In this document: positions 20,450 to 59,309 of the stretch, in pieces
Layout: every line of letters starts with the position of its first letter
Position numbering within the stretch: position 1 is the stretch's first letter
Sequence record: MZ443769.1
DNA: 64,000 nucleotides
Direction: 5' to 3' (one strand)
Notes under the pieces: generated by a model
What the model was told of the DNA's origin: nothing
Databases searched by the model: none
The model's input: the letters and a program-made list of their open reading frames with translations, nothing else
Translations under genes and position numbers: made by a program

Positions 20450-21676
20450 TTATTGTGCGAACTTTTTCAGTGTTTTTTCCAGTGCCGCGTAGAACTCGTC
20501 ATAGGTCTTAAACACACCCTGCTGTTTGAAATGATTCATAGGCAGGTCAGTAGGCAGTTCACCGCCGTCGCGTGTCCACGTAACGATTGTGTACATGCCA
20601 CTACCTTTCAGATCACGCAGATTATCAGTGAAGCCGTTGCTCTTACCGAACAGAACACCAGACTTGGCTTGACTGTCGTTCAGGCCGATAGCAACTTCTG
20701 AACCACCGTAGCTTGCTTCAAAAGCATAGGTCTTACTGTTCTTAGGCTTGAGGCCGAAGATTGACAGCAGGTTCTTCGCATCGCTATGCGCACCACGCTC
20801 AGAAGAGGTGGTATCTTGAATCTGTTCAAACAGCATGTTCATGTCATACTGCTTTTTAGAATTCTTCGCAGCAGCGCCAGAACTAATCAGACCCTTAATG
20901 CCTTTAGCCAGAGTAGCAGCAGTCGGACGTTTGAAGTCTTGGCCTACAAAGATACCGCCAGACTTATCGACGCATGAGATCTGCCATGTAGCAGCACCTT
21001 TACTTGTGCGTGAATTGAATGGCGGGTCGATGGACACTGACTTATATTTAGCGCTAGGGTTCTGCGCTTCGAAAGTCCACGGACTTGACTGACCGTTCGT
21101 TTCTGAGTAATGACCGACGAAGGCCAAACCAGTTGCAGAAGAGAGTTGAGCAGCAATGGCATCAATCTTGGCTTGATTGATGGTTTCCATAGTGCGACCA
21201 GTGACTGTAGCCAAATCAACTTTAGGAAGCGCTGCATTTTTGTCTACGCGAGTAGCAACAACTTTTACTTTCTCGGTAGGCTTACCGACAGCAGCCGCGT
21301 CTTCTTTGACAGGGCGAGTTGTCTTAGAAGGTGTGATGTTACCCGCAGTTACCTTGATACGGATAGCGCGTAACGCATTGATGGTAGCCACCAGCGTCTT
21401 AGCTTTGTACAGGTTCTTTACGGCAGTAACGAGAGTCTTACCAGAAGCCTTCTTCATGAAAGCAGTGGCAGTCGCTTCGTCAGCAATCACATCAAAGATA
21501 GCGGAGAGTTTTGACGTCTCCAGCTCTTTGATTTTGATCAGTTCTTCGAGACGCTTGAGAATGATAGCGGAGTTGCGTCCGAACAGGATTGCACCTGTTT
21601 CAATCTGCTTTTTAGTAACAGCAGAAGTGGATTCAACAACATCCCCATCGAGATTACCCAATTTAATCAGAGACAT
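20450..21676 (-). CDS. Basic hypothetical protein, probable internal virion protein
   Basis: 408 aa, K/A-rich; leader MSLIKLGNLDGDVVESTSA is shared with other proteins in this window. Confidence 0.75.
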   Translation of the reverse strand: MSLIKLGNLDGDVVESTSAVTKKQIETGAILFGRNSAIILKRLEELIKIKELETSKLSAIFDVIADEATATAFMKKASGKTLVTAVKNLYKAKTLVATINALRAIRIKVTAGNITPSKTTRPVKEDAAAVGKPTEKVKVVATRVDKNAALPKVDLATVTGRTMETINQAKIDAIAAQLSSATGLAFVGHYSETNGQSSPWTFEAQNPSAKYKSVSIDPPFNSRTSKGAATWQISCVDKSGGIFVGQDFKRPTAATLAKGIKGLISSGAAAKNSKKQYDMNMLFEQIQDTTSSERGAHSDAKNLLSIFGLKPKNSKTYAFEASYGGSEVAIGLNDSQAKSGVLFGKSNGFTDNLRDLKGSGMYTIVTWTRDGGELPTDLPMNHFKQQGVFKTYDEFYAALEKTLKKFAQ

Positions 21677-21685
21677 GTTCGTTCC

Positions 21686-22234
21686 TTATTTGCGCTTTTT
21701 AGTCCAGTTGCTGTTATGGTTGTTGCGGTTCTGATTTTGAGTATCATCAGCGCCGGCATCAATCTCTTCGTCTTCTTCTGACTCGTCTTCTAACTCAGGC
21801 TCGTCTTCGGCCTCAATCTTTGACGTGTCGAGCACTTGCGCCTGCAGTGGTTGCTGCGATACAGTGCTTGCAACAGCAACATGCTCAGGTGCTTTCTGTT
21901 CTTCAACAGTCTTATCACCAAACACATGAGCGTGAACGTGGTCACAAGTAAGCAGTGCGCCTTTCTCTTTCAGAATGGCTTGTGCGCGTTCTTCATCCCA
22001 ATTAGCCCAAATAATATCAAGGCCTTTGTACGCATAGTGCATACCTTTAGGTAGCTTGCCACGACCATTGAACGGCAGGCCATTCGAAGGTACAGCAGGC
22101 TCGAACTCGTCAAGCATTTCCCACTTGCGTTTCGCTTCGATGCACTTAGGGCCCCACACACCATCGCACTGGCCATCGTACAGGCCAAGCAATGTCATGA
22201 TGATTTGAATCTTCTGATAGAAGGTACTAAGCAT
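21686..22234 (-). CDS. Hypothetical protein with possible peptidoglycan-binding helix motif
   Basis: LLGLYDGQCDGVWGPKC resembles the PG_binding_1 DG-x-x-G-P-x-T motif; acidic tail. Confidence 0.65.
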   Translation of the reverse strand: MLSTFYQKIQIIMTLLGLYDGQCDGVWGPKCIEAKRKWEMLDEFEPAVPSNGLPFNGRGKLPKGMHYAYKGLDIIWANWDEERAQAILKEKGALLTCDHVHAHVFGDKTVEEQKAPEHVAVASTVSQQPLQAQVLDTSKIEAEDEPELEDESEEDEEIDAGADDTQNQNRNNHNSNWTKKRK

Positions 22235-22275: not shown

Positions 22276-25200
22276 TTATACCGACTTGTTCTTAGAAGCA
22301 GTCAGTTTCAACTTGTCGAGCGACTGGATGCACTTCTTCAAGTTCGTGATAGTGTAACCTGCTTTCACGATCTTGTTGATGCGAGCCTTAGCACCAGAGA
22401 CGTTTTTCACGAAACCAATCCACATGCCGGTAGCAATATCAAACGTACCAAACTTACGAGTGTTCGGAACTTTGGTGCCAACGAAACGTTTCATTTTCGG
22501 GTTCGTGTTCAGGTCGAACATGATGCGCAGACGATCTTCCATCACCATCGGATATGCCTTGACGTGTTGCTTGTCGTTAGCAGTCTTGTGGCGTACAAGG
22601 AAGAACTGTTTCAACTGCGATTGCAGTTTAACAGCCAGCTTGTAGTTGAAGCTCAGACGCGGTGTTGATTCGTCGAAACTGTCCATGATGAACTCAAGAC
22701 GTTTAGCCGATGCGTTATCGAATTCCAATTTCTTGGAGTAGATGAAGTCCATCATCTTTTCGAAGTCCGCATAGTAAGCACAGTCGAAGTAGACGTAATC
22801 ACCAAACTCGGTGAAGTCGAAGTCTTTCAGTGCTTTCGCGTCAGGGTCTGTCGCGTCTGCATACAGCGCTACGAAGCCGTTGTATACGGTAGGCGTCAGG
22901 TCCATTGCCATGTCAGTACCGCTATCATCAAGAGTAATGATGCTGGCACCAGGCTTGGCTTTACGCACAGTGTTCGGCAGTGGAGGTAATTCAGATGCAC
23001 GGCGACGGCGTACTTTGCCCGCTGCTTCCTGAACACCTTCATTAACAGGCTTACCTGCTGCTACGTTCTCACGGCGCTTCTTAACGCGAACGGTCTTGCG
23101 TTCCTGAATCTCAACCTTCTCTTCTGTGGCGCGAGTGTCAGCAGTCTGTGATTCATCGGCGATGGTGTCTTCGACTTCAACACGACTTGCTTCCGCTTCG
23201 GCACGTTTGCGATCTTGAGCAGTAGCCCAAGGCTTACGCACAGAGAAGAACTTCTTGAGATCTGCTTTGCCCACAGCAGTAGCAACGTGGACTTTGTTTG
23301 CAGGAACAGTAACGAGATCTTCTGTACCAGACAAACGCACACGCACTGTGGTGATAGGCGAGTCAGCACGGAGTTTACCGTCAACAACACGAGCAGTAAC
23401 ACCGACAATCAGACCATTACCGAATTCAGTAACGACAGGCATCTTGTCCATCGCTGCTTTCATCATCGGACCGTCCGCGAAGTTCTGGTTACGTGCCCAA
23501 TCCAGCAGACGCTGTAAGCCCCAGCCATGACGGTCTGGAATCTTCTGGTTTGCTACGACAGGTGCTTGCTCCAGTACGCGGAAGTTTTTCAGAGGCGGTG
23601 TTTCCGGCAGAGGCATCATTGCTGCAACTGTCGTTGTACGCATCTCGTGGAACTCTTGCGATTCGATATCGTTCAGGTCTTTCTTCGCGCGGAAGTATTC
23701 GATGAAGTCTTCCATCGTGTTGTTATCGATCAACAACTTCGCGCTCATTTTGATCGGGTCAAGCTTGTATTCGTCCAGCTTGTCGTACTTAGGATTACCC
23801 TTTTCATCGAAGCGGGTTTTCTCAAGCGTCTTCCACATCAGACGAGCAACCTTACCAACTTCTAAGGTCTTGTTCGTCATCACCCAGTCAATGAATACGA
23901 CTTCACGAGGCATATCACCCGGCTTACCGTTTTCATCAAGTTGCGCAGCAGAAACATCAGGACGGAAGATACGAGCAGTAGACTGATCGTAAGTACCTGG
24001 TGACCACGGTGTATCACAGCGGATAATACGACTACCCATCTGCATGTTGTGGCCTTCACTGATAGCCTGTTCGTTCGCAATCAGAATCTGAACAGCGTTG
24101 TCAGTTTTGAATGCGTCGAGGTTAGCGTCTTTGCTTTGGCCGAGCTTACCGACTTCGCCGTGATAGAGAGCAGCAATCTTCTTGTAGTTCTCAGGCAGTG
24201 CGTTGTAGATAGCGTTAGCAGCACGAACATAACGAGTGAAGACGATCAGCTTACCTTGTGTTTCAGGTTTCCAGTAATCTGTGTCATCACTTGGTGGAAC
24301 GTTGGACGGCGGCAGATACTGACGTTTGAACGCATCGGTCTGCTTACGCGCAAGATACTTCTGACCTTGATAGACAGCAATATCCAGCTCACGAGGTTCT
24401 ACGCCCGGACGCCATTCGAAGATCTGTTGGTCAGACTGATTGTTTGGATCAGTATCACGCTCAGGCTGTACTTCGAAGTGTTTCTTAATACGGTTGATGA
24501 TAGCGACAACTTTCGCACTGACAAAGTTAGTCACACCAGCATCTTCAAACGTCAGGCGCGCTACGTCATCACCCATTGGGTCAGTCAGTAACATCTCCAT
24601 ACGCTGGAAGTACATGTTCAGGTCAGCGTTACCTGCGAGCAGCGCACCGAGATCATCACCTTCTTCAATCTCAGATACGTCGATGCCGCTTTCTTCATCT
24701 GGACCATCTGCATCACCACCGTCATCTTCGTCGTCTTCCATCGCACGTCTACGCGCTTTAGCCGAGTTAGATGCCTCTTGCAGTTTCTCCAACACTTGAG
24801 AGTACATCGCTTGATATACTTCCATGTGCAAGTTGGAGTTAGGCACGGATGGATCATCAATCTCTACCTGAATGAAGGTGTCGATTGGGTTAGGCAGCAT
24901 GAACGCCCAGTGCTTACGCTTGAACTGAATGAACGCTGTGTGGTTTGCCATACGAGAGTGAGCACGACGAATCATTTCGATATCGTCTTTCGCACCGTCA
25001 TACGCTACGTCGAGTGAGTCACCGAACATAGCAGGTGTCATCAACGCGGCTTGACCAACAATGTCACGCACACGGTCTGTTACCAACGTACCAGTAGCGA
25101 TACGCGCATAACGAACAGAAGGCGCAGTGAATACTGCTTTCGTGTTGAAGTGCACCTGACTACCAGACTGACCGCCGCTGTAGTTCTTAACTTTGTGCGA

Positions 25201-28131
25201 CTCATCCAGCAACACGTAGCTGAAATTGAAGCGGTTAACGAACTCAACAGCACCACGTACGCGAATACGGACGCCACCGATATCAACGTCGATTGTACCT
25301 GTTTGCAGGAAGCTCAGGCCAACGATGAAGATGGTGTTCTGTGGAGCTTGAGAGATAACATCGTACAGACGTTCTTCGCCCCAAGTGTTCACAGTGTCAG
25401 ACGTGATAGGCACTGCGTTCCAACCGTCTGCGATCTTATGCAGGTCATCACACCAGTTAGCAACAAGGTTAGACGGACAGATGATCAGAGGACGAATGTT
25501 CTCTTCACCCAAGTCGTTCAACTCTTGAATGGTCGCAGCGATATCGGTCAGGCCGATAATCGTTTTACCACCACCAGGCGCGATAAAGATAGTCGCATAA
25601 CGAGGACGTTTACGCAGAGTTTTGTGCGCTTCGAGCTGGTGAGGCAGCAGAGCAGAACCTGCTTTCAGACCAGGAATACGAATGTCTTCGATAGTGATTG
25701 AACTATCAGGCTGGAGCTTATCAATTTCGTTTTCAGCCGCTTCGAAGATTTCCAGAGACTTAGGAATAACGTCGCTGTACATCGTTGCGAATGGCAGGAT
25801 GATTTGTTGCAGACGATCAGAAGCTGGAGCAGTGTCAGAACCCGCGAGAGAACTGAACAGCGCTTTACGATCACCGTTCTTAATCGCTTCACACATCTGG
25901 CGATACAGAGCACCACCGAAGTAGTTGTTCAGTCGAGCCATGTCCATCAGCTTAGAACCAGAACCCATCACGAAGTAGTGCGTGTGAGAAGGCATTGATT
26001 CCATTGCAGTGGTCATGTCACCAGATTCAGCGATTGACTGTGCAGCCAAGTTAGAGCCACGCAGACCAGACGCATCGTTCAGTACGCGAATCATAATACG
26101 CAACATAGTCAGCGCAGGACGATCGTTCGCAATCTCAGGAACGGAGAAGTCGTTCTCAACAAGATTCTGATACAAGCTCTTGTCCATAGGACTTTCGTCG
26201 AGAGAAGCGTTCTCTGCATCCATACCAACAGAAGCACGGGCGGACTGTACGAGGCTACGCAGGTCAGTAACGTTCTTACTGCCGAGCATGAACTCGTAGG
26301 TCTGACAGGTCTGTGCGATGATGTTCAGCAACTCGAATACTTTGCTGTTCTCCGTAGAGTTAAACACAATACGGTTTTCAGTAACACCATCAATTAGTCG
26401 GCCACGGCCTTGCTCCGCTTTCGCAGCTTCGATCAACAGATCGTTAGCAGGCTTGAATGACACCATACCAGAAGAACTCTGGTTTGAACTGATTGCTGCG
26501 ATAACAGACGACGCAGAACGGAAGTTCGGTGCTTCACCAGGTTGAGCGAAGTCATACCCAAGTGAGTCAGCAACGTCCAGTGCAGAAGGTGCTTTCATAC
26601 CAACTGTACGAGTTTCTGAAACAGACAGACCACCGCCGTTAGACGTGTTCACCACCAGCGCAAAGTCAGGGTCGATACCGATACAGATGTTGCTGAATCG
26701 TGCGAGTGATTTCGCTTTGGTCTGAATGTCTTTGTCGAAGTCGAGGTTCTTGTTCTGAATCGCGTAGATGTTTGTACGCAATGTATCGTGGTCAGTAGAC
26801 AACGGTACGCCTTTCTCAAACAAGTCTTCCAGCACTTGGTTCAGCGTAGACTCATACGACTTAACCATTTCGACGTCAATCTGGTCACGCGTAGGCAGCA
26901 CAGACAGCGTACCGTTCGGCATGATAGTCATACCGTTATCATCAGCAACAACATCGTGCACACCGTAGCCGAACTTCTCACGAAGCGTTTTCAGCATAGG
27001 CAGCATTGTGGCAGACGTAACGTAACGCGGGATACGCGCAGCACGACGAATACCAGTACGAGTTGTGTTAGACACACGGAAGTAATACGAACTCCAACCC
27101 TGGAACCAGCGATACAGACACATGGTCTGGGCTTCTGCGCCTTGAGAAATGTATTCAACCATTTCTTTTTCGAGGCTAACAATCAGACCACCTTCTGCAC
27201 GGACGTCAGTTTTGAGTGCAACGTCATTGAACTCAACAGGTGTATCGTTGCTGATCTTCATCGCCTGAATTTTGCGATCAAGCATTGCTTTGCCCGGAAT
27301 CGAACGAACACCAATCATCATGAAGTCGCCTAAGGCATCGACAACATTTTTATCCAGATTAGCGAACAGGTCGATATCGAGACGGTTCATTGACGGGTCG
27401 ATTGAACGCAGCAGCGCGTTATAGATAGACCAGTCTTTGTCGAGAGGTACACGGACTACTTTGGTGTCAAAGGCGTTTGCGTTTGTACGTGCTTCACCGA
27501 AGATATCTTTGTACAGAGTACGTGCGGCTTCGATAGCGCGTTGTGCGATATCAGAGCTGTACACGTTCATGTTGGTTGATTCGAACTGTGCGTCTTTATC
27601 GACACGCGGACGGTCTGAACCAGCATCACCTAACAGGTTGAAGTTACCATAACCAGCCAGAGGGCTAGTTGCACACGGCGTACCGGCCATGATGATATCT
27701 TTACCGCCAGGGAAGCGCGTACTGTTTTCGATGATAGCGCCAGATGTTCCGCCGAGATGCTGACTCAAAGAGTTCTTGATCTCACGGCTCAACTTACTAC
27801 CATTGAGCTGGGTATTGATACGCATGGTCGCCATTTCGATATTCGCTTTAACACGCTTCACGAAATCATCAGGACTTACTTCCAGCATATCTTCGAATTC
27901 AGCACCGTGAGCAACGATGTAGTTGATCAGGTCGAAGGCCGCATAGATACGAGAGACAGTTGCAGCAGCAAACAGCGCAAGCGGTTCATAGTAATGACGC
28001 GCCTTACTGTTGGTGTACATCTTCGTCATCTTCGCATCAAACTCAGGAGGCAAGGACTTAACAGCAAGAGCCTCATTGAATGATTCGGCAATTTGCTGAG
28101 TAGCCGTAGCGGACGTACTGATATTAATCAT
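22276..28131 (-). CDS. Giant SNF2-family helicase/translocase (1951 aa)
   Basis: LLPHQLEA, APGGGKT, LIICPSNLVANW, DESHKVKN, TGT, SEGHNMQ, PWSPGTYDQSTARIFR; about 800-aa N-terminal and 500-aa C-terminal extensions. Confidence 0.88.
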   Translation of the reverse strand: MINISTSATATQQIAESFNEALAVKSLPPEFDAKMTKMYTNSKARHYYEPLALFAAATVSRIYAAFDLINYIVAHGAEFEDMLEVSPDDFVKRVKANIEMATMRINTQLNGSKLSREIKNSLSQHLGGTSGAIIENSTRFPGGKDIIMAGTPCATSPLAGYGNFNLLGDAGSDRPRVDKDAQFESTNMNVYSSDIAQRAIEAARTLYKDIFGEARTNANAFDTKVVRVPLDKDWSIYNALLRSIDPSMNRLDIDLFANLDKNVVDALGDFMMIGVRSIPGKAMLDRKIQAMKISNDTPVEFNDVALKTDVRAEGGLIVSLEKEMVEYISQGAEAQTMCLYRWFQGWSSYYFRVSNTTRTGIRRAARIPRYVTSATMLPMLKTLREKFGYGVHDVVADDNGMTIMPNGTLSVLPTRDQIDVEMVKSYESTLNQVLEDLFEKGVPLSTDHDTLRTNIYAIQNKNLDFDKDIQTKAKSLARFSNICIGIDPDFALVVNTSNGGGLSVSETRTVGMKAPSALDVADSLGYDFAQPGEAPNFRSASSVIAAISSNQSSSGMVSFKPANDLLIEAAKAEQGRGRLIDGVTENRIVFNSTENSKVFELLNIIAQTCQTYEFMLGSKNVTDLRSLVQSARASVGMDAENASLDESPMDKSLYQNLVENDFSVPEIANDRPALTMLRIMIRVLNDASGLRGSNLAAQSIAESGDMTTAMESMPSHTHYFVMGSGSKLMDMARLNNYFGGALYRQMCEAIKNGDRKALFSSLAGSDTAPASDRLQQIILPFATMYSDVIPKSLEIFEAAENEIDKLQPDSSITIEDIRIPGLKAGSALLPHQLEAHKTLRKRPRYATIFIAPGGGKTIIGLTDIAATIQELNDLGEENIRPLIICPSNLVANWCDDLHKIADGWNAVPITSDTVNTWGEERLYDVISQAPQNTIFIVGLSFLQTGTIDVDIGGVRIRVRGAVEFVNRFNFSYVLLDESHKVKNYSGGQSGSQVHFNTKAVFTAPSVRYARIATGTLVTDRVRDIVGQAALMTPAMFGDSLDVAYDGAKDDIEMIRRAHSRMANHTAFIQFKRKHWAFMLPNPIDTFIQVEIDDPSVPNSNLHMEVYQAMYSQVLEKLQEASNSAKARRRAMEDDEDDGGDADGPDEESGIDVSEIEEGDDLGALLAGNADLNMYFQRMEMLLTDPMGDDVARLTFEDAGVTNFVSAKVVAIINRIKKHFEVQPERDTDPNNQSDQQIFEWRPGVEPRELDIAVYQGQKYLARKQTDAFKRQYLPPSNVPPSDDTDYWKPETQGKLIVFTRYVRAANAIYNALPENYKKIAALYHGEVGKLGQSKDANLDAFKTDNAVQILIANEQAISEGHNMQMGSRIIRCDTPWSPGTYDQSTARIFRPDVSAAQLDENGKPGDMPREVVFIDWVMTNKTLEVGKVARLMWKTLEKTRFDEKGNPKYDKLDEYKLDPIKMSAKLLIDNNTMEDFIEYFRAKKDLNDIESQEFHEMRTTTVAAMMPLPETPPLKNFRVLEQAPVVANQKIPDRHGWGLQRLLDWARNQNFADGPMMKAAMDKMPVVTEFGNGLIVGVTARVVDGKLRADSPITTVRVRLSGTEDLVTVPANKVHVATAVGKADLKKFFSVRKPWATAQDRKRAEAEASRVEVEDTIADESQTADTRATEEKVEIQERKTVRVKKRRENVAAGKPVNEGVQEAAGKVRRRRASELPPLPNTVRKAKPGASIITLDDSGTDMAMDLTPTVYNGFVALYADATDPDAKALKDFDFTEFGDYVYFDCAYYADFEKMMDFIYSKKLEFDNASAKRLEFIMDSFDESTPRLSFNYKLAVKLQSQLKQFFLVRHKTANDKQHVKAYPMVMEDRLRIMFDLNTNPKMKRFVGTKVPNTRKFGTFDIATGMWIGFVKNVSGAKARINKIVKAGYTITNLKKCIQSLDKLKLTASKNKSV

Positions 28132-29819: not shown

Positions 29820-30650
29820 CTAGGCAGACGCGGAGAAGATACCGACAGTCTTATCTAGACCTGCTTGATACGCCTGTTCAATGTCTTTCGCAGCAGATCG
29901 AATGATCTGTTGAGTAGCGGCATGGGCGTTAGCAATCGAATCAACATCAAGATTGTTTTTGTTCCATGCTGTGATAGCGTGGAAAACAGAGATAAGGATT
30001 GTGCCTGCGGATTCAGCAAATGGCCCGAGTACTTCACTATTAAGAATCTCACCAAGCTGGTTAACGTCACGCAGCGCACGAAGGTCAGCAATGATCTCAC
30101 GCATCTGGTTGTACAGTTGCATAAGAGCGTAAATGTCTTTACTCTGCTTTGATACTTCATACTGCTTTTCACAGATACGAGCAATCGACTGGCACTTGGT
30201 GAACATGGTGATATATTCTTGGAGCTGTTCATTCTCCTGCTTGATAACGTCTGGAATATCATCAAGCACTTCCATCAATTGACCTTCTAATGCAGCAAGG
30301 TCTGTCGTCTTCGCAGGCTTATCGCGTTTCTTCTTCGCTTTCTTGATGGTGTCTACAGCGTTCTCTTTTTTCTTCTTTTTCTTTTTCTTCGGTGCGTCGT
30401 CTTCTGCCTGCTTCTTAGCAGTTGCAGCAGCGATCTCCGAGTACATCGAATCAGCATCAATCAGAGTAGGCATCAGGTCGAGTGCAGGGTCACGCTTCTT
30501 TTTCTTCTTAGCGCGAATGCCTTTACTCACTACCTTAACTGATTTGGCTTTCTTGATAGAAGTCGCTGCCTTGACAGTTGCTTTACTCGTCTTCTTTTTC
30601 GGACGTGCTTGGGCACTGGAGCCAATATCATCCAAGCTTATGGCTGGCAT
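29820..30650 (-). CDS. Hypothetical protein with poly-Lys N-terminal half and helical C-terminal half
   Basis: 276 aa with runs such as AKKKKKRD and PKKKKKKKKE. Confidence 0.75.
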   Translation of the reverse strand: MPAISLDDIGSSAQARPKKKTSKATVKAATSIKKAKSVKVVSKGIRAKKKKKRDPALDLMPTLIDADSMYSEIAAATAKKQAEDDAPKKKKKKKKENAVDTIKKAKKKRDKPAKTTDLAALEGQLMEVLDDIPDVIKQENEQLQEYITMFTKCQSIARICEKQYEVSKQSKDIYALMQLYNQMREIIADLRALRDVNQLGEILNSEVLGPFAESAGTILISVFHAITAWNKNNLDVDSIANAHAATQQIIRSAAKDIEQAYQAGLDKTVGIFSASA

Positions 30651-37267: not shown

Positions 37268-38398
37268 TTATTTCTTGCCTATGCTTTTAGAGAATTCGTC
37301 TCGCGATTTAAGCTCAGCTTTAGCGGCGTCACGAGCGGCCTTATGCTTAGGATCGGCAGCTTTACCTTTATCGTCATGGTGTTTAACCATACCAGTTAAA
37401 TCATCATGGTTCAGGTACTTAATCCGTTTAGGATTCTTTGTTACCTCATTTAAATGATTCTCACGCGTCTCTGCAAACTTCTTAGCGAAGAACTCACCAC
37501 GAGAACCTTTTGTATGTATACCACGACGACCAGCTTCACGGTCTAACTCGTCTTTTGCTTCACTCTCTGCCCGATATTTGGCACGGTCGCCTTTGATTAC
37601 GCCCAGATTCGCTTTATACTCCGCAGCATGTTTAGCATCTGCATGTTTAATAGCGCCGGTCAGTTGAGAGTCAGTCAGTTTGCGAATCTTCGTAGGGTCT
37701 TTGGTAACTTTATCAAAAGTCGCTTCACCAGCAGTAACTTTCTTGCTTGCTTCCTTTTCTGCGCCCTTACGCTTGGCGGCGATCTTTTCTTCGGTTCGCT
37801 TCACGCCACGTCGGACAGACTCTGCGTGACTAGGCTTTTTCTTAGCGGCATCCGCATTGGCTTTCATTGCAGCTTTAGTCAGACCGATCAGCATAAACTT
37901 CTCGTTAGGAACGAACTTAGGCTTGAATACACCACGCTTGCCTGCAACACTGAACTCAGTGGACTTAGCCGTCTTCAACACTTTCGGGTCGAACACTGTC
38001 TCAGCATTAACAGAGAAGGTCAGGCCACCAAGACCGTGCTTACGCGCAGCAGCATTAGCAGCTTTCAGATCGAGTTTGGCGTGCTTACGGTTGTTCGCAG
38101 CAAGGGCGCGAGCTTCTTTAGCGTCCTGACGTGCGTCAGCCTTTTCGAAGCTTTTTGTTTTCGGGTTCTTCGCTTTAGCCACGGCCTTATCAGTAAGGGT
38201 TTTATACTTCACGTACCCTTTACCGAAAGCGATTGCACTTTTAATCTTGCCTGCAACTTCGGTCAAAGCAGCGCGTTTGCTACTTGGGATTACCAGTTCA
38301 GTTTTACCTGAAATCTTAGCAGTCTTATAGCCGGGTTCTTTGGCAGCGGATTCAGAAACGATATTGCTACCGTCGAGTTTTAAACGAATGAGTGACAT
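37268..38398 (-). CDS. Lys/Ala-rich basic protein, probable internal head protein
   Basis: 376 aa; leader MSLIRLKLDGSNIVSESAA; two similar C-terminal segments, KDPTKIRKLTDSQLTG and KNPKRIKYLNHDDLTG. Confidence 0.8.
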   Translation of the reverse strand: MSLIRLKLDGSNIVSESAAKEPGYKTAKISGKTELVIPSSKRAALTEVAGKIKSAIAFGKGYVKYKTLTDKAVAKAKNPKTKSFEKADARQDAKEARALAANNRKHAKLDLKAANAAARKHGLGGLTFSVNAETVFDPKVLKTAKSTEFSVAGKRGVFKPKFVPNEKFMLIGLTKAAMKANADAAKKKPSHAESVRRGVKRTEEKIAAKRKGAEKEASKKVTAGEATFDKVTKDPTKIRKLTDSQLTGAIKHADAKHAAEYKANLGVIKGDRAKYRAESEAKDELDREAGRRGIHTKGSRGEFFAKKFAETRENHLNEVTKNPKRIKYLNHDDLTGMVKHHDDKGKAADPKHKAARDAAKAELKSRDEFSKSIGKK

Positions 38399-38441: not shown

Positions 38442-38444
38442 CAT

Positions 38445-41306: not shown

Positions 41307-41447
41307 TTATAAAATGATTGTCACGAACTCGTTGCGATTCTTCTTAGGGTTAAACCATACTTCATCTATGATCTTTCCCATACCGAAGTTGATCATGCAC
41401 ACAGTGCGTCTACTGACTAACTGCCAATGCTTTTTACGATCAAACAT
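41307..41447 (-). CDS. Small hypothetical protein (46 aa)
   Basis: Not in ORF track. TGATG coupling; MFDRKKHWQLVSRRTVCMINFGMGKIIDEVWFNPKKNRNEFVTIIL. Confidence 0.5.
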   Translation of the reverse strand: MFDRKKHWQLVSRRTVCMINFGMGKIIDEVWFNPKKNRNEFVTIIL

Positions 41448-41959
41448 CACTGGTCCTTAATCATTTTGACTCTGGTGTGATTGAATATTCCATACGTCGG
41501 AACATCGTGGTTCGCACCTTCGTTACCTAAGATGGAGTCATATTCAGCGGAAGCAAGAATCCGACTTATCTCTGCATACTCGTCCCACCACATATAGACA
41601 CGCTTATGCGTAGAGGCAGGAATGAGATGTGAGAGTTTGTCCAGACGTTCAATAAGTTTAAGTGCTTCATCACGACCAACAAGCTTCTGTTGGAATGACT
41701 CCATGATAAGAGCTTTAACCCGCCTATAGATTTCAGCAAACTTCACTTCTGTCCAGAGGGAACGGAAGTTCAGACTAGCGGTGCGGCCTGGGTCTGCATG
41801 AAAACTGTAGAGTCGCCCATCTTCTGCATACATTTCAGCATACGCACGGTCTTGAGTTACCCAAGTCATGTGTAGCTTCTTCGCTTGTTCTTCGGACCAG
41901 TCGGAGGCTAGCCCTCGGTAGAAGATTTTGGGCGATGACAGACTAACGAAAATTTGCAT
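41447..41959 (-). CDS. Putative ADP-ribosyltransferase-fold protein (ART-PolyVal-like)
   Basis: TAATG-coupled start MQIFVSLSS; FYRG, WVTQDRAYAEMYA and YDSI..TYGIFN..VK follow the ART strand motifs. Confidence 0.55.
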   Translation of the reverse strand: MQIFVSLSSPKIFYRGLASDWSEEQAKKLHMTWVTQDRAYAEMYAEDGRLYSFHADPGRTASLNFRSLWTEVKFAEIYRRVKALIMESFQQKLVGRDEALKLIERLDKLSHLIPASTHKRVYMWWDEYAEISRILASAEYDSILGNEGANHDVPTYGIFNHTRVKMIKDQ

Positions 41960-43014
41960 TAGCGACCGGAAGTGCCTTTTTCCCAAGCTGTCTGTGAATC
42001 TATGCGATTAGGCTTCTCGTACTGGCTAAGAGCTTTTACAGCACCGCGTAGTTGTTTACGAGCAGTGGCTTCTGGCACAGGTGAATTGGAACCACCACCG
42101 TTGCCTCCAAAGTTTGCATACAGTTTCCACCTGCCGTCAGGCTGTTTCGACATACGGAAGCTACCTGTACCATGCTTGTATTCGAATGAGTTACCAGATG
42201 CAATAATCTTGCCGCGTGATACACCATCTTTAGTAGTCATGGTCTTGATCAGGCTCTCCATTTTCGGTGAAGGGTTTGTGCCTGAAACTTTCACTGCACC
42301 TGCTTTCTTACCTGTTAAGGCAGCAGTGCGCTTTTCTTTCAGCTCTTTTGCTTTAGCCTTAGTCATCGCACCAGTCACTGCATCTTTGCGTTTGACAGTC
42401 TTCGGTGCATCAACCGGCTTCGGCTTGTCGCTCGGCTTAGCTCCTGGTGTAGATTTCTTAGCAGCAGAGGAAGCACCGATCTTATCGAACTTATCACCTG
42501 TTGCAAAACGAGGTTTGAGTAACGATGGACTGCGATTCGTACCGCTCGCTTTTACCCAGAAGCTATCAGCCTTAGCTTTACCGATCTTACTGATCGTGTA
42601 ATCAGGTTGCGTCGAAGTGATGTAAGACGGACGGATAGGCGTGGACAAAACTTTCAAGCCCGCTTTGGCGAGTGAAGCGATTGCAGATGCAGCCAGCTTC
42701 TTAGCGGCAGTAACATCCTTTTTAATCACAGCGTTGTTGGCTTTGATCTTAGCGCTGATAGGAGCTTTCTTCTCAGTGTCTCGCGTTGCTTTCAACTTGA
42801 GTTTCAGCTTTGCAGTAGCCTGACCAAGTTTAGCAGCAGCCACGCCTAAGGTCTTCGCTTGCTTCAATGAAGTAGCGGCCTTAGCAACAACAGGCTTGTA
42901 CTTAGAGTTGATAACAATCGTCGGGCCGTTAGAAGATTTGACGATGTGATACGAAGGTTTCTTTACAGCAGATTCTGAGGCCAATGTCTCAGCCACATTA
43001 AGTTTGATTTTCAT
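41959..43014 (-). CDS. Lys/Ala-rich basic protein, probable internal head protein
   Basis: 351 aa; leader MKIKLNVAETLASESAV. Confidence 0.8.
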   Translation of the reverse strand: MKIKLNVAETLASESAVKKPSYHIVKSSNGPTIVINSKYKPVVAKAATSLKQAKTLGVAAAKLGQATAKLKLKLKATRDTEKKAPISAKIKANNAVIKKDVTAAKKLAASAIASLAKAGLKVLSTPIRPSYITSTQPDYTISKIGKAKADSFWVKASGTNRSPSLLKPRFATGDKFDKIGASSAAKKSTPGAKPSDKPKPVDAPKTVKRKDAVTGAMTKAKAKELKEKRTAALTGKKAGAVKVSGTNPSPKMESLIKTMTTKDGVSRGKIIASGNSFEYKHGTGSFRMSKQPDGRWKLYANFGGNGGGSNSPVPEATARKQLRGAVKALSQYEKPNRIDSQTAWEKGTSGR

Positions 43015-43022
43015 TTTAGTCC

Positions 43023-43625
43023 TTACACCAAGGCTCGTGCTGGTGCATCAAAGTTTTTGCCTGCCGAGTAATCACCGAGAGCAGCGTACAGAGAATCACG
43101 CATCATGTTCTGGATGATATCAGAGTTATGTGCTGACGCATCTTGAAACGCGACTTCAATCGCCAGAGTGCGAGGGTTGACCACAGCATAACGAATAGGT
43201 GCGATACCCTGACAGCGACCCCAAGAGTCTACACGATCTTGCAGGCCAGCACTGAACGGGATTTTGAAGTCAGTCAACTGAAACACAGCAGACTGAATTG
43301 GAGGTGGAGCAGAGAGCGACATGAATTTACCTGTCGGACTCAGCTTCTCCATAGTTGTAGACGCATCAAACACGGACTGGAAGTTGTCTGCGATTGATGT
43401 GATGTTCTTCAACTTATAGCTGTTTGTCGAAAGGCCCTTGCGAATCAACTGTGCTACCTGAACTTCGTAGTCACCAGTATCGCCTTGAGCATAAGAGACA
43501 AAAGCGTAGAGAGCAACACCATTGTCTTCACGCAGCAGACGATGATCGAGTACACGGAACCCGACCACTTTAGTCAATGCTTGCGCGTTCATTTGGGTTG
43601 CTGCCAAAGAAACGAAGATCTTCAT
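43023..43625 (-). CDS. Hypothetical protein with M-x-I-F-V-S-L leader
   Basis: 200 aa, MKIFVSLAA, internal FMSLSA; TAATG coupling. Confidence 0.75.
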   Translation of the reverse strand: MKIFVSLAATQMNAQALTKVVGFRVLDHRLLREDNGVALYAFVSYAQGDTGDYEVQVAQLIRKGLSTNSYKLKNITSIADNFQSVFDASTTMEKLSPTGKFMSLSAPPPIQSAVFQLTDFKIPFSAGLQDRVDSWGRCQGIAPIRYAVVNPRTLAIEVAFQDASAHNSDIIQNMMRDSLYAALGDYSAGKNFDAPARALV

Positions 43626-43957
43626 TAACGCATCTTGCTCAGTGCGTCTTTGGCTTTGGCCAGAGTAGGTTGAACATCGGAATCACCGAACTCAGCATTG
43701 ATAGTGATACCGACTTCGATCACGTTGAAGCCTTCATCTTCGTCCGCCATAACAACACCGAAGCGAGCAGTTTCACCATTGTACTTGATGAAACGGTAGT
43801 CGAGGATATCGTTCGGACCAGAGATATCAGACGGCATACCATCAGCCACTAACATGGCGTACAGAGATTTCTTGTCCAGACCTTTCATGAAGAAAGCTGT
43901 AGGGACGCTTGACTCAGATGGTACTGCGTCTTTCAAATTCAATTTAATAACGGTCAT
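43625..43957 (-). CDS. Hypothetical protein with SESS leader
   Basis: 110 aa, MTVIKLNLKDAVPSESSV. Confidence 0.75.
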   Translation of the reverse strand: MTVIKLNLKDAVPSESSVPTAFFMKGLDKKSLYAMLVADGMPSDISGPNDILDYRFIKYNGETARFGVVMADEDEGFNVIEVGITINAEFGDSDVQPTLAKAKDALSKMR

Positions 43958-44556: not shown

Positions 44557-44564
44557 AAAATTAG
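44557..44564 (-). promoter_or_regulatory. CTAATTTT motif upstream of the endolysin operon
   Basis: 27 nt upstream of the start, directly after a terminator. Confidence 0.65.
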
Positions 44565-44574
44565 CGTCAGAAAC

Positions 44575-49011: not shown

Positions 49012-49043
49012 AAAGAAGGGCCACCATTAGGCAGCCCCGTCTT
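49012..49043 (-). terminator. Rho-independent terminator
   Basis: Minus strand GGGCTGCC-TAAT-GGTGGCCC-TTCTTT. Confidence 0.7.
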
Positions 49044-49479
49044 AATACTTCTTAGGTTTCTTAATTGTGGATTTAGGTCGCTTGATTTTACGCAGCGCTT
49101 TACGAGCCTCAACAATATCTTTGGCCAGAGTAGCACGACGAGCTTTGGTCTGCTCTGTGTCTTGCTCTGTACCTTTAAGTTTGTCGAGACGATTCCACTC
49201 GCTAACAAGACGGTCAACGACAGCCGCTCTGCTTACACGCTGCTGGTTAACGCGAACGATATCCTGATTCGTTTTAACGGAGCGTTGTGTGTCTTGCACT
49301 TCGGTACGTGCAGACTTCACGCCCTTAGTATCACCGTCAGATTGTTTGTCGTTGAGCTTCTTACGCGCAAGCTGTGATCTACGTTGTGCACCTTTCAAGT
49401 CATCCTTAGAGTTCTCCAAGCTGACCTTCGTATCTTCAAGAGGACTTGTGCGAGCACTCAGGCTGATAAGAATTTTCAT
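49042..49479 (-). CDS. Basic coiled-coil protein with MKILISLSA leader
   Basis: Start 49479 with AGGAG SD (ORF track start 49542 crosses a terminator). Confidence 0.75.
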   Translation of the reverse strand: MKILISLSARTSPLEDTKVSLENSKDDLKGAQRRSQLARKKLNDKQSDGDTKGVKSARTEVQDTQRSVKTNQDIVRVNQQRVSRAAVVDRLVSEWNRLDKLKGTEQDTEQTKARRATLAKDIVEARKALRKIKRPKSTIKKPKKY

Positions 49480-49620: not shown

Positions 49621-50154
49621 CTACAATTCGAGTTCTTCGTGCTCGGCTTCCATTTCAGCGGCAGACCAAGAACGAATCACGGATGCGTTACCACGATTAC
49701 CAGTCAGCATTGTTTTAACTGCTGGTGATGCTTCTACTTCTGCGTAGTGGTTGGCGAGAGCTTTCTCGTCTTTGAACCACATAAGTGCCGATGCACCTTT
49801 TGAGCATACTAAGAACTGAACAGGCTTTCCATTACCGACGTTCAACGTCATGTAATAATCACCAACGCCATTAACACTGAGCATAGGCATGGGCTTCATC
49901 ACGTATTGGAAGTCGTCCGCTGTTTTAAGCGTCTTATCGCCGAGCAACCAGATAGCACCTTCTTCACCTGAGCGAATAGCACTGAGTTGACCGCGGCGCG
50001 TAGAGATTGTACCAAACGTTTCTTGATCGAAACGGGACAGACCGAAGATAAGGCTCGCAAGCTTCTTCAGGTCAGGAGTCGTGCAAGGACTATGAATTAT
50101 AGCCTTACCCTCAGACTCAAGTATGATTTTTGAAAGGGAAACAAAGATTTCCAT
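49621..50154 (-). CDS. Hypothetical protein with MEIFVSLSK leader
   Basis: 177 aa; CTAATTTC motif upstream. Confidence 0.75.
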   Translation of the reverse strand: MEIFVSLSKIILESEGKAIIHSPCTTPDLKKLASLIFGLSRFDQETFGTISTRRGQLSAIRSGEEGAIWLLGDKTLKTADDFQYVMKPMPMLSVNGVGDYYMTLNVGNGKPVQFLVCSKGASALMWFKDEKALANHYAEVEASPAVKTMLTGNRGNASVIRSWSAAEMEAEHEELEL

Positions 50155-50187: not shown

Positions 50188-50195
50188 GAAATTAG
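50188..50195 (-). promoter_or_regulatory. CTAATTTC variant of the late motif
   Basis: 33 nt upstream of the start; GACGCTAATTT context identical to 44557. Confidence 0.6.
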
Positions 50196-50219
50196 CGTCT
50201 GATCAGACTTTTCTGAAAT

Positions 50220-56598: not shown

Positions 56599-58281
56599 TC
56601 ACTGGAGTTTACTAACTATTTTTTGATACTCTCTATTTACAGTTTCTATATCGGTAGAGAACCCTCTCTTCGTGAATAGATTACGTCTAACGGTACCCAT
56701 ACGCAAGCTGTTCTCCCACAAGCGCATAAACAACAGGCTATTAAGAGTCGGTGTCATGAAAGGTTTCTCTTTCAGTTCAACATCCCCTTTGTAATCCGTT
56801 AGCAGGATAGCACCATCGAATTCCGCACTACACCACTCGGTCTCAGCCAAGATCTTGAGAAGGTTATAGCTCTCTTGACCTTGAACATAATGACTAAGCA
56901 CGGTGTACTTGTCTTTGTTGAAGAGTTCGATCTTCACAGAGTGCGAACACTGGACGCTATTCTTAAAATGATATTCGCCGCCCCTGCAATACGAGGAGTC
57001 TCTGATTCTATCGCAGAGTTCAGAAACAACTTTACCTGCAGGCTCAAATAGTTTTTTCCATCTGTCCCAAATCCAATCAACGTAGTCCGCTAACTCCTTG
57101 TCATCGAACTTATTCTTTTCTGCAACACGTTGAATTTTCGGGTCGCTGCATAGTTGACGATAGATATCAGTTTTTACAGGACGTGGTTGCTCGTCATCAG
57201 ATCTGCTTTCAAAATGTTGACGGAACCACTGGCGATTACTCCAACCACTATAGATACCACCGTAGTTAAGAGTCTTCGCTGTGCCCCTGCTTATCTTCAA
57301 ATATTTAGCAACAGCATCGTGATCAAGTGCCTCAAGCTCAGGACATTCAAGCCCATACTCCGCCAAGAGTTCTATGAGCAGGACCATCTGAGCATTCGGC
57401 ATATCGAAGTTACGGCCATACGAATGATCGAAGCATAACAGCTTAACCAACTTAGGCATAGCAGCAGCAGTTCCAAAAAGCCTTGAGCCTGTTGGGTTCA
57501 TTTTGTATATGTCGTAAAACTCGACAAGCCTGTCATTCGGGTCGTCGTTAACGAGCTTAAACCCAAACTTGCACACGCGCTTTAAGAATATATCGAGACG
57601 GAAATGCAGGCCGTCTTTTCGATTTGTCTTAGCGTTTTTCATTATGTCAAGGAATCGGTCGAGATAGAATCTATACGGACGTTGATTCTTTTGAGCCTTG
57701 TTAATGAGTGTTATCAGTTCGGAGCTACGTCCCCTGTGCTGTGAAAAGTTATCAGGTCTGACGAACGGTTTTGGTTTTATCGACGTACGGAACGAGGACT
57801 CAACTAAATCTTTCTCGTTAACGTAAATAGGTCTACGCCTCAGAGGTTTCATCAGGTTGTACATGGGTTCATCTTCAACGCACAAACTCGTAAACGTGGA
57901 TAAAATCGTTTTATTGAGCGTGTACTTACGGGCAATCCCCTTAACGTAATCGTAACGTGTTCTGTCGACCCTTTTGTCCAACCAAGCTTGCACGGAATGC
58001 GCTTTCCATCGGACTAAGGCATATCGCATCTTTTCATGAGCCCGCATGTACGTGTAGGTGACTACGGTTTCATTATAAATGTTTCTACGGTCAGAAATCT
58101 TCGACTTATCGATCAGGTGCATGAAAAACCAAGCTAAACTCTCGTAAAACTTATCAGATTTAGCGTTCGGTGGCTTTGGACAGGAATAAATCATATCCCA
58201 GAAGTATTTATGCGCTGATCTTTGTACCGTGGCTGCCCACCCTGGTAGCTCGGCTTTCTTTTTGAACACGGCCTTGGCCAT
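56599..58281 (-). CDS. Minimal PolA-superfamily (TV-Pol-like) polymerase/primase
   Basis: GSRLF, motif A-like NFDMPNAQM, motif B RGTAKTLNYGGIY, YVQGQES, motif C-like EFDGAIL; no exonuclease motifs seen. Confidence 0.6.
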   Translation of the reverse strand: MAKAVFKKKAELPGWAATVQRSAHKYFWDMIYSCPKPPNAKSDKFYESLAWFFMHLIDKSKISDRRNIYNETVVTYTYMRAHEKMRYALVRWKAHSVQAWLDKRVDRTRYDYVKGIARKYTLNKTILSTFTSLCVEDEPMYNLMKPLRRRPIYVNEKDLVESSFRTSIKPKPFVRPDNFSQHRGRSSELITLINKAQKNQRPYRFYLDRFLDIMKNAKTNRKDGLHFRLDIFLKRVCKFGFKLVNDDPNDRLVEFYDIYKMNPTGSRLFGTAAAMPKLVKLLCFDHSYGRNFDMPNAQMVLLIELLAEYGLECPELEALDHDAVAKYLKISRGTAKTLNYGGIYSGWSNRQWFRQHFESRSDDEQPRPVKTDIYRQLCSDPKIQRVAEKNKFDDKELADYVDWIWDRWKKLFEPAGKVVSELCDRIRDSSYCRGGEYHFKNSVQCSHSVKIELFNKDKYTVLSHYVQGQESYNLLKILAETEWCSAEFDGAILLTDYKGDVELKEKPFMTPTLNSLLFMRLWENSLRMGTVRRNLFTKRGFSTDIETVNREYQKIVSKLQ

Positions 58282-58652
58282 TTTTAACCTCAGAACAACT
58301 TTCTTGGTTGATCTTTACAGAATCTCTGGCTGATCATGGTATATACGCTGTATAAATGCTTGTTCTAGCAATTCTCTACCCAAAGTTGATATCAGGAGGA
58401 TATCTATCAGATAGGTTAGGTACAGCTTCATCTACATGCAGCTTGAGCGCACTATAGTCACACGAAATTCATACCATAGACCGATGAGGGAGCGTCCAAA
58501 AGTATTCATTAGGCGAGTAGTGATATGTCCAGAGGTGCGAAAGGGCTAAACCGTCTATAGGCGCCTTTTTTGGTGTCAATTCGGGATTTTCTCAATCTAA
58601 CGTATGCGTGATTAAATCCTTGCACCTCTGGAGCGATTCTGTAGGGAGTCGG

Positions 58653-59309
58653 TTATTTTTTGCGCGAAACCTTCTGCCCCAGTTTTACGCCAATCTGCGT
58701 CATAATGCGCTTAACGGTATCTCCGTCATGCTCCGCCATAGCCTGCGCAAGCCTTTCGCCCTGCTCGCGTGAAAGTTCAGGCATAACCATTTTAAGCATA
58801 GTCGAACGCATTTGAGCGCTCTTGCTGCGCTTTTTCGACAGCGAGGTCGTTTCCATCTCCTGCGCTACTCGGCGCATTGTACGTTGGACGCGACGATCAG
58901 CGAAGATATCACCAAAGATATCGCCGAATAGGTCTTTGAACGACATACCGCCTCCCATTACATCGTCCTTTGTGAAACGAACAGGCTGTCCGAGCGCATT
59001 CGTTTTAGCGCAATGTGTAGATTCGACAGCGTTTTGAATGCGATCGCCCGTGCGCGTTACTTCGTCAGGACGTGACGGCTTGCCCTCTGCTCCAGGATTT
59101 GTATCACCGTTACGCAGCGCAGGGTCACCTTCAACTTGTTTGTTTTGATCAAACATGTCATCGGCTGTAGCGCTTTGATTCGGGTCAAACGGAATCTTGC
59201 CTGTAAGCTTGTTAGGGTCAGGATACGAACGAGGGATATCAGACGCAGGCTGAGGCATGTTCGTCATATCGCCGTTCTTTTCGCTATTCAAACTAATCAT
59301 TACTCGCAT
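58653..59309 (-). CDS. Hypothetical protein with MRVMISLNS leader
   Basis: Start 59309 with AAGGA SD; low-complexity N-terminal half. Confidence 0.7.
   Translation of the reverse strand: MRVMISLNSEKNGDMTNMPQPASDIPRSYPDPNKLTGKIPFDPNQSATADDMFDQNKQVEGDPALRNGDTNPGAEGKPSRPDEVTRTGDRIQNAVESTHCAKTNALGQPVRFTKDDVMGGGMSFKDLFGDIFGDIFADRRVQRTMRRVAQEMETTSLSKKRSKSAQMRSTMLKMVMPELSREQGERLAQAMAEHDGDTVKRIMTQIGVKLGQKVSRKK

Follow-up and report, generated by a model that had tools for sequence, protein, structure and literature searches.

Short N-Terminal Leaders with an S-x-S Core in Erwinia Phage pEp_SNUABM_52 and Their Probable Role in Capsid Targeting and Head Maturation

Introduction

The internal proteins found in T-even phages are diverse, and the capsid-targeting sequence (CTS) is the only part that they have in common (PMC3012670). 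In T4, the CTS, MKTYQEFIAE, is a leader that ends in a head protease site; the head protease makes a single cut in it, and the cargo is retained (PMC8442874). In phage P1, the 250-kDa helicase-type protein DarB of the Dar anti-restriction system is loaded into the head via no more than 30 N-terminal residues, and these can also take a reporter into capsids (PMC9024508). In phiKZ and SPN3US, one prohead protease (gp175/gp245) removes N-terminal propeptides from many of the head and ejection proteins and also cuts itself (PMC10052503). The present study concerns a stretch of 64,000 nucleotides from sequence record MZ443769.1 (the window), in which otherwise unrelated proteins begin with a leader of 8-19 residues that has an S-x-S core. 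The analysis indicates that these leaders are likely to be a capsid-targeting and maturation propeptide specific to this lineage and equivalent to the T4 CTS. A description of this leader system was not found in the literature searched.

Bases 36000-51000 of the window are 100% identical to positions 160000-175000 of Erwinia phage pEp_SNUABM_52 (MZ443769.1); therefore, the window coordinate is the record coordinate minus 124000. The same bases are 99.1% identical to phage vB_EamM_Y3 (genus Sasquatchvirus). The lineage is the PaBG/Lu11/Y3/AD1/JA group of jumbo myoviruses (PMC7412058), and the window genes are nearly all on the minus strand.

The resemblance to T4 described here is computational. 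As with the T4 CTS (internal proteins IPI-III, prohead protease gp21), a leader of approximately 10 residues is found on hypervariable, clustered, often very basic and unrelated proteins (PMC8442874, PMC3012670). However, the sequences differ: the leaders lack MKTYQEFIAE, the shorter class of leader (class A) reads MxIFVSLS and ends without Glu, and the putative site is phi-x-S-x-S, without the P1 Glu of the T4 site L/I-x-E. Here, the numbering of the core as phi(P5)-x-S(P3)-x-S(P1) assumes a cut after the second Ser. In addition, a second, longer class (class B, 17-19 residues) is present, and the capsid protein, unlike T4 Gp23, is of a small HK97 type with a 70-residue delta domain. The DarB case resembles that of the 1951-residue SNF2 protein of the window, which begins with MINISTSA; in contrast, the DarB signal is longer than 9 residues, needs other Dar proteins and has been shown for DarB only (PMC9024508), and the two have no sequence similarity. 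Processing of many proteins at their N-termini by a single protease would be shared with phiKZ and SPN3US, whereas their lineage is unrelated, their propeptides are protein-specific and mostly 111-254 residues long, and their motif is A-x-E (S/A/G-x-E; PMC10052503), which is not the pattern found here, as class A has no Glu and the Glu of class B lies inside S-E-S.

Leader Sequences at the Protein N-Termini

The first-pass annotation listed 11 N-termini in the window, A1-A7 and B1-B4. All 11 were found on the minus strand where it had placed them, and translation from the starts reproduced the peptides exactly. Ten of the starts lie inside the annotated stretch 124001-174000 of the record, over which the depositors' coding-sequence starts were compared, and all ten coincide with these. 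The starts of A1, A2 and A6 are fixed independently by TAATG overlaps, and most of the others lie behind an AGGA-type Shine-Dalgarno sequence.

As shown in Table 1, A1-A4 and B1-B4 are solid members of the set, and A6 is a probable one. The proposed membership of eleven is reduced to ten, because the orthologues of A7 (MQFISTAN, start at 39833) begin with MQYIAAPAN, without S-x-S, and A7 was dropped. With the genes found outside the first-pass range, some 15-20 otherwise unrelated proteins of this Erwinia jumbo phage bear the leader. The ending S-x-S-A given for the leader holds for the S-x-S core, whereas Ala is not fixed at its end: the conserved core, which is better written as phi-x-S-x-S, can also be followed by K, S, G, N, Q, H, V or M. 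The class A pattern is M-x-(I/V/L)-phi-(V/I)-S-(L/I/E)-S-x, and that of class B is M-x-(L/V)-I-(K/R)-(L/I)-N-(L/I)...phi-x-S-(E/T)-S-(A/S)-(A/V). The common core is exemplified by F-V-S-L-S in class A, by I-V-S-E-S, L-A-S-E-S and V-P-S-E-S in class B, by V-H-S-Q-S in the capsid protein and by V-R-S-E-S in the head maturation protease.

The motif is concentrated at N-termini, as the first-pass annotation would have it. Bare S-x-S-A is enriched only 3.9-fold in the first 25 residues (p = 6e-4), and [VIL]S[LEIQT]S is enriched 5.5-fold there (p = 6e-5). When the window is translated in six frames, [MVL]xI[FLIV][VI]SL has four matches, each at the ATG that opens a reading frame of 145-200 residues, and SES[SA][AV] has three, each at residues 13-16 of an open reading frame. 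The degenerate DNA pattern ATG-NNN-ATH-YTN-RTN-WSN-YT matches the window four times, against 0.04 expected from shuffles; over loci spanning the entire Y3/SNUABM_52 genome it matches five times, and all five are gene starts, the fifth being that of Y3 gp206, a gene absent from the window. A position-specific scoring matrix (PSSM) was built from seven leaders of Dickeya phage JA29 only, which belongs to another genus, and was scanned over record positions 1-188000 (223 annotated proteins, 57,545 positions, of which N-termini make up 0.39%). Ranks 1-4 fell on residue 2 of A4, A3, A1 and A2, and six of the top 12 positions were N-terminal. The B3 site, AETLASESAVKK, ranked 8 of 57,545.

In class A, Ser6 is encoded by AGT, TCT, AGC and TCC, Leu7 by CTG, TTG, CTG and CTT, and position 8 by TCA, GCA, AGT and TCA. 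Selection acts on the leader peptide, while the DNA varies synonymously and the Ser codons switch between AGY and TCN. On this variation, a DNA-level repeat or regulatory element was rejected. It also bears on the explanation that A/T-rich DNA at the 5' end of the coding region aids initiation, so that the element would act through RNA or translation and the peptide would be a by-product. The first codons do have a fairly high A/T content (ATGAAAATTTTTGTT...), a common trait of genes that are well translated; however, the amino acids are fixed where synonymous sites vary freely, with Ser switches of two to three bases among the changes, the conserved S-E-S of class B lies 40-50 nucleotides into the gene, and the peptide motif is also found inside the capsid protein and at residues 7-9 of the protease. 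An action at the RNA level is accordingly considered highly improbable.

A signal for export or membrane insertion (Sec, Tat or lipoprotein), or a label read by a protease or chaperone of the cell, could also be N-terminal, partly hydrophobic and terminated by small residues, and S-x-S-A resembles the A-x-A type. Yet the class A leaders, with 8-9 residues, are far too short for such a signal and have no basic n-region, no hydrophobic core of at least 10 residues, and Leu or Glu at position -3. The cargo is highly charged and of a cytoplasmic type, and a genuine lipoprotein-like signal of the same genome, MKIIVLVLSLFLVGCSG, looks quite different from the leaders. There is thus very little to recommend the export explanation.

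Capsid Protein and Head Maturation Protease

The first-pass annotation had named the major capsid protein as a place where the same site might occur. The core was found in the Y3 capsid protein (366 residues), which reads ...GELVHSQSAASNGLTNEEK, with VHSQSAA followed by SNG. The only relative of this protein in the PDB is 6wkk ("Gp27 major capsid protein", 280-residue chain; E = 3e-8), and Gp27 is the capsid protein of phage G (PMC12484599). Residue 4 of 6wkk aligns with residue 74, which places residue 1 of the chain on capsid residue 71, directly past S-Q-S-A-A. The S-x-S core is therefore predicted to sit at the maturation boundary of the capsid protein. Loss of 70 of the 366 residues would correspond to 19%; a mass loss of approximately 20% on maturation is reported for the PaBG capsid protein, together with the processing, at unstated sites, of several virion proteins of PaBG (PMC7412058). 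Across 36 capsid orthologues, a conserved delta domain precedes, at this point, HQSTSS, HSHSGA, HSESSV, HSNSSV or EVSES; the boundary HSESSV of one relative corresponds to PSESSV at the end of the B4 leader. The JA29-trained leader PSSM ranked the Y3 capsid site 13 of 57,545. A covariation of capsid site and leaders in PaBG is only suggestive: its leaders have changed from Ser-rich to Ala-rich, and its capsid site reads APSAREE.

The head maturation protease, Y3 gp143 (L013:9341-10120), lies outside the window and belongs to phrog_18299 (E = 1.8e-131). It begins with MGKPVRSESFDVSD, and most of 39 orthologues, with identities as low as approximately 40%, retain the N-terminal phi-x-S-x-S-F, with the motif at residues 7-9. 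Sequence searches of Pfam and the PDB gave no match for gp143. In the AlphaFold2 model, which has a mean predicted local distance difference test (pLDDT) value of 85.6, the 14 N-terminal residues are disordered. The only specific PDB matches of the model were to T4 gp21, the top three Foldseek matches being 5jbl with a probability of 0.77-0.89. The family also has a Cys/His cluster (C191, C194, C206 and H208), invariant or nearly so, between strands of the catalytic core, which suggests a zinc-ribbon insertion; H124 and S181 are invariant as well.

Cargo Proteins and Leader Exchange with T4-like Phages

The bearers span 77-1951 residues and isoelectric points (pI) of 4.1-10.5. B2, B3 and A3 contain 21-26% Lys+Arg, with pI values of 10.1-10.5, and two other bearers are extremely acidic. 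That the bodies are unrelated, as the first-pass annotation stated, is true for most of them, which are of different families; the exception is that B2, B3 and Y3 gp206 are distant paralogues, with a weak kinship (phmmer, 9e-6 and 2.5e-4). Apart from this group and a trio of KMPT-N proteins, mutual BLAST and phmmer searches among the bodies gave no match. The possibility that class A consists of paralogues sharing a first beta-strand was rejected on the all-versus-all searches, the composition and the structural model of A4. For the ten window proteins, Pfam and PHROGs gave nothing informative on function.

The A1 body is ART-PolyVal-like as judged from its family: A1 itself does not match PF18760, whereas 6 of 24 aligned homologues do (best 1.9e-7), and R15 (in YRG), Y44 and E147 are invariant in the family. 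JA29 gp192 is an ART-PolyVal protein (E = 2.3e-27; 96.9 bits against a cut-off of 31.2). The KMPT-N (PF20294) trio lies outside the window, with record starts at 100310, 109339 and 117314; two of the three (100310 and 117314) have an S-E-S-A leader, and gp142 is leaderless. In Y3, gp142 (L013:8227-9339, record 108227-109339) adjoins the head protease gene and has in addition a HELAH zinc-peptidase motif. The A1 family and gp192, together with the three KMPT-N proteins, recall polyvalent proteins (PF18760, PF20294), although here the domains stand alone, each with its own leader, instead of being fused in a giant polypeptide. In Yersinia phage fHe-Yen9-02, the leader is on a GNAT acetyltransferase. 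By analogy, the cargo types (ART-PolyVal, GNAT, SNF2 helicase, and very basic or acidic proteins) appear to match known packaged proteins; they recall the basic internal proteins of T4 (PMC8442874) and the DarB protein of P1 (PMC9024508).

A HMMER scan with A1 gave 81 relatives, in which the homology begins at residues 8-13, that is, past the leader; many of them are internal domains of proteins of 2-5 thousand residues. Among the stand-alone homologues, some have S-L-S-type starts (MRIIISLSG, MKIFVSLAS, MKVYVSVAS, MQIQLSLSG and MKLILSMSA), and others start with MKTFKQFITEK, MNNFKQFLIEK, MKSFSQFINEK or MITFSQFISEK directly before the conserved YRG. The MKTFKQFITEK protein is encoded on metagenomic contigs of uncultured T4-like phages with genes for Gp23, Portal_T4, T4 gp19 and gp15. 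On contig Ga0100386_10000085 (JGI; L020:10001-15980), its gene lies in a run of seven, six of them consecutive, that have the start MK(T/S)FK(Q/S)FI-x-E or a close variant; the run includes two ART-PolyVal-type proteins, one of which is a Pfam ART-PolyVal match, and one DUF5662 protein. To judge from these starts, the run would be a clear-cut case of a cargo cluster with a T4-type CTS. The occurrence of A1 homologues with either leader type indicates that the same cargo family bears the local leader of each lineage, one of which has an established function. At the level of the N-terminal sequences, the leader is thus shown to be interchangeable with a T4-type CTS on homologous cargo.

Leader as a Module across Relatives

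The orthologues compared were those of pEa_SNUABM_35 (SNUABM_35), AD1, JA29 and fHe-Yen9-02. The leader is kept across Sasquatchvirus, Alexandravirus, Salmondvirus and the unclassified fHe-Yen9-02, while the bodies have approximately 32% identity or are lineage-specific. Three leader positions (M1, I3 and S8) do not vary in the alignment of the A4 family, and four others (F4, V5, S6 and L7) are at least 90% conserved. The distant A4 members, which were taken from tblastn as a wider homologue search gave only relatives of at least 65% identity, are 63-75% identical over the eight leader residues versus 32-36% overall. In the AlphaFold2 model of A4 (17-sequence alignment; predicted template modelling score 0.67), residues 1-8 have pLDDT values below 50 and no secondary structure, and residues 10-140 are folded, so that the leader lies outside the fold, for which no match was found in the PDB. 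Two annotated starts in relatives fall inside the protein: the A1 orthologue of SNUABM_35 (L007:22576-23086) is annotated from an internal Met, and tblastn covers the full protein; the A2 orthologue of AD1 (L014:23772-24300) is likewise annotated from an internal Met, with the frame open upstream. The leaders of PaBG are Ala-rich variants, MAAIKINLAEAAN, MLIKINLLEAVAAK and MQLLIAMASA.

Y3 gp206 (256 residues) begins with MKIFISLSA followed by KTPSYIITEYEGKKIVAVPNSKRAA; here a class A leader heads a body of the B type, which aligns with B2 (SESAA followed by KEPGYKTAKISGKTELVIPSSKRAA) and B3. An insertion/deletion (indel) of 784 nucleotides between Y3 and SNUABM_52 removes gp206 and runs exactly from the ATGAAAATTTTTATAAGCCTG to the ATGAAAATTCTTATCAGCCTG leader-coding 5' end (window 49453-49621; cf. 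L001:30266-31350), with the A3 leader DNA at one of its ends. As the indel ends in two leader 5' ends, the untranslated region and the Shine-Dalgarno sequence of gp206 now drive A3. The leader DNA thus appears to behave as a cassette joint. JA29 has at least nine clustered leader genes, including two for proteins of 595-653 residues and one for an ART-PolyVal protein, which are without a counterpart in the window. The cluster is plastic in this sense: its leader genes lie at 41.4-50.2 kb, the content differs in JA29, and leader DNA bounds the gp206 indel.

The clustering of many bearers, the distant paralogy of B2, B3 and gp206, and the recombination at leader DNA seen in this indel could also be expected if the shared N-termini were functionless relics of common descent, left by local duplication and divergence or by recombination that copied 5' ends. 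However, the bodies are of different families (ART-PolyVal, GNAT, KMPT-N and SNF2) without mutual matches and with the wide range of length and pI given above, and unrelated genes at a distance of 60-100 kb have the leader as well. The identity found over the eight residues of the distant A4 leaders, against the low identity elsewhere, is more than a neutral relic would hold, and the peptide is kept through synonymous and Ser-box changes. A functionless relic is hence regarded as improbable.

Upstream Late-Type Motif

The motif GCTAATTT, mostly within ACGCTAATTT, has 10 copies in 188 kb, all on the minus strand, and 8 of the 10 lie 30-50 nucleotides before a start codon; its extended form is (A/G)(A/C)(C/T)GCTAATTT. 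It also precedes the tail sheath and PAAR genes. This placement, on the minus strand only, makes it a candidate late promoter element, and the genes behind it would be late. The first-pass annotation placed most leader genes in units behind a late motif. Three transcription units with leader genes do have the motif (Table 1), whereas their late timing is a presumption drawn from it.

Table 1. Leader-bearing genes and copies of the late-promoter-like motif. Positions are those of the window unless marked as record positions; the leader positions are in parentheses.
Feature	Position	Strand	Leader or sequence	Product and remarks
A1	41447..41959	-	MQIFVSLSS (41933-41959)	170 residues; body ART-PolyVal-like (predicted); AD1 orthologue LQIFVSLSA, TTG start, leader kept
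A2	43023..43625	-	MKIFVSLAA (43599-43625)	200 residues; orthologues MQIFVALSK (SNUABM_35), MRISISLSA (Yen9-02), probably MEILVSISA (JA29)
A3	49042..49479	-	MKILISLSA (49453-49479)	145 residues, pI 10.5; orthologues MEIMVSLSV, MQVLISLSK, MEIVISLSM
A4	49621..50154	-	MEIFVSLSK (50128-50154)	177 residues
A5	58653..59309	-	MRVMISLNS, looser (59283-59309)	218 residues; backed by orthologues MTRIKISLSG, MARIKISLSG, MKISISLND
A6	22276..28131	-	MINISTSA (28108-28131)	1951-residue SNF2-type helicase (SNF2-rel_dom, Helicase_C); relatives keep I-S-x-S-A: MNQMISTSA, MNQIISRSA; PaBG MGSLFTLNSLSAA (..LNSLSAA)
B1	20450..21676	-	MSLIKLGNLDGDVVESTSA (21620-21676)	408 residues; orthologues ..GAVVSISAATK, ..GTVVSVSAANK
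B2	37268..38398	-	MSLIRLKLDGSNIVSESAA (38342-38398)	376 residues, pI 10.1
B3	41959..43014	-	MKIKLNVAETLASESAV (42964-43014)	351 residues, pI 10.4; orthologue MTVIRINIADSLLSESAVKK
B4	43625..43957	-	MTVIKLNLKDAVPSESSV (43904-43957)	110 residues; orthologues MSLIKLNLDESVSSTSA, MSLIKLNLKEAVKSESAA, MTAIKLNLGKNVKSESSV
Possible weak member	29820..30650	-	MPAISLDDIGSSAQARPKKK	276-residue basic protein; N-terminus kept in relatives (MAAISLDDIGS.., MATSISLDDL..)
Bearer beyond first-pass range	record 100310		MLIFLSESA; MLIFLSESARKP	KMPT-N protein
Bearer beyond first-pass range	record 89147		MMLNVSLSAK	Nudix hydrolase
Bearer beyond first-pass range	record 46029		MQLNIVLSAK	
Bearer beyond first-pass range	record 117314		MVLSESAS	KMPT-N protein
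Bearer beyond first-pass range	record 192062 (L010:5062-5568)	plus-strand arm	MIVFISLSQ	168 residues, 33% Asp+Glu
Bearer beyond first-pass range	record 196138 (L010:9138-9455)	plus-strand arm	MEMLISLSH	
Late-promoter-like motif	50189..50199	-	GACGCTAATTT	upstream of A4
Late-promoter-like motif	44558..44568	-		upstream of the unit endolysin, B4, A2, B3, A1
Late-promoter-like motif	38435..38445	-	ACGCTAATTT-type	44 nucleotides upstream of B2
Late-promoter-like motif, copies elsewhere	35160-35170; record 102612, 89693, 84142, 64223	-		

Proposed Mechanism and Its Weighing

The first-pass annotation regarded the leader as a candidate capsid-targeting or maturation signal, and every computational test that was run agrees with this. 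In the proposed mechanism, diverse proteins would be made late in infection with a short N-terminal extension; the set would comprise an ADP-ribosyltransferase of ART-PolyVal-like type, proteins of extreme charge (very basic and Lys/Ala-rich, or very acidic), KMPT-N proteins and, probably, the SNF2 helicase. The extension, an exposed and strand-like peptide, would bring the protein into the prohead during assembly, and its end would be the phi-x-S-x-S recognition site of a gp21-like head maturation protease (Y3 gp143). The protease would cut the leader at or just past the second Ser, and would likewise trim its own N-terminus and the delta domain of the capsid protein. The mature cargo would then remain in the head and enter the host with the DNA, and the leader-coding DNA could provide a short homology for the gain, loss or re-heading of cargo genes. 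Recruitment to the prohead, cleavage and its exact bond, retention in the virion and injection are what we infer from the computed likeness.

Several points weigh against this mechanism. Virion proteomics for SNUABM, Alexandravirus or fHe-Yen9-02 was not found in the literature searched; the paper on AD1 and the JA phages contains no proteomics, the Y3 GenBank record has no mass-spectrometry notes, and none of the leader proteins is labelled "virion structural protein" in the Y3 records. The capsid boundary motif drifts in distant relatives (S-A-L-A types; APSAREE in PaBG), the fold match of the protease with gp21 is weak (E 0.03-0.08; template modelling score 0.34/0.49), and leader position 9 is variable, the scissile bond being putative. 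Some bearers resemble ordinary enzymes (the Nudix hydrolase and the SNF2 helicase), and two (record 192062 and 196138) are found in the plus-strand arm, where the neighbouring genes seem to be early or middle ones. Also encoded nearby is a second peptidase (53877-54848; phrog_17197), which is conserved but of unassigned type.

The second peptidase is called a Zn-metalloprotease in PaBG and is found beside the leader cluster in every relative examined. It has no HExxH motif, no Pfam match and no recognisable family; it was considered as the processing enzyme and, for want of a recognisable motif or family, dropped. It has a place in the explanation that the leader is an N-terminal cap without an addressing role, removable by the head protease or by this peptidase; such a cap could, for example, keep enzymes inactive until late in infection, and its bearers would not have to be packaged in the head. 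The class A leader barely exceeds the putative site, consisting of M-x-I plus phi-x-S-x-S, all relatives have the phrog_17197 peptidase gene at a distance of 4 kb from A4, and the enzymes among the bearers (ART, GNAT and Nudix) could be under a zymogen-like control. On the other hand, the T4 CTS is equally short and yet does both jobs (PMC8442874), and an A1 homologue in a T4-like phage has a leader of the packaging type. Even PaBG, with its altered S-x-S part, still has the hydrophobic N-terminal half of class B (MxLIKLNL), and the second peptidase is without a recognisable catalytic motif. A mere cap is consequently judged unlikely, though it is the most serious of the alternatives, and a combined targeting and maturation propeptide is preferred.

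A wider form of the preferred reading, to which we would give about an even chance, is that the PaBG/Y3 group has an undescribed head-protease specificity (phi-x-S-x-S, no acidic P1), that the 8-residue leader, hardly longer than this site, serves as a universal address tag by which some 15-20 enzymes and charged proteins are loaded into the head, including an ADP-ribosyltransferase and a 220-kDa SNF2 helicase, and that the tag DNA is a recombination joint for the exchange of cargo cassettes. If the leaders are indeed such signals, a likely head-carried, host-delivered protein set would be identified for a widespread, unstudied lineage (Y3, Alexandra, AD1, JA29, PaBG and many metagenomic relatives), and genes now called "hypothetical" would become candidate early factors of counter-defence or host takeover. 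Capsid-targeting codes defined by sequence, of which T4 and P1 have one each, would then number three, and prohead proteases would gain a new specificity. The code of the leaders, compact, transferable and distinct from those of T4, P1 and phiKZ, would allow proteins to be loaded into large capsids by means of a very short tag, and a leader serving as a cassette boundary would explain the rapid turnover of cargo genes.

Other Features

The products of the two genes in the plus-strand arm, at record 192062 and 196138, are extremely acidic (pI 4.1 and 4.4), and one of them is a long Asp/Gly/Ser run. Two adjacent genes of the window, 38991-39833 (280 residues) and 39902-40837 (311 residues), both start with MQFI, and by residues 20-30 each shows an (F/L)FD motif. 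Two or three MQFI-like genes (MQYIAAP.., MQYLSSF.., MQYIHSF..) are present in relatives, and several genes at 49-58 kb of the record have N-termini of similar appearance. Since BLAST and phmmer gave no mutual match, any kinship would be one suggested by the N-terminal pattern, which is not the S-x-S leader. The gene at 35313-35990 encodes a leaderless protein of 225 residues that consists mostly of AKPKAAK repeats (histone H1-like) and is kept in all relatives; it lies upstream of the genes for a 427-residue protein, a 368-residue protein and the head-tail connector.

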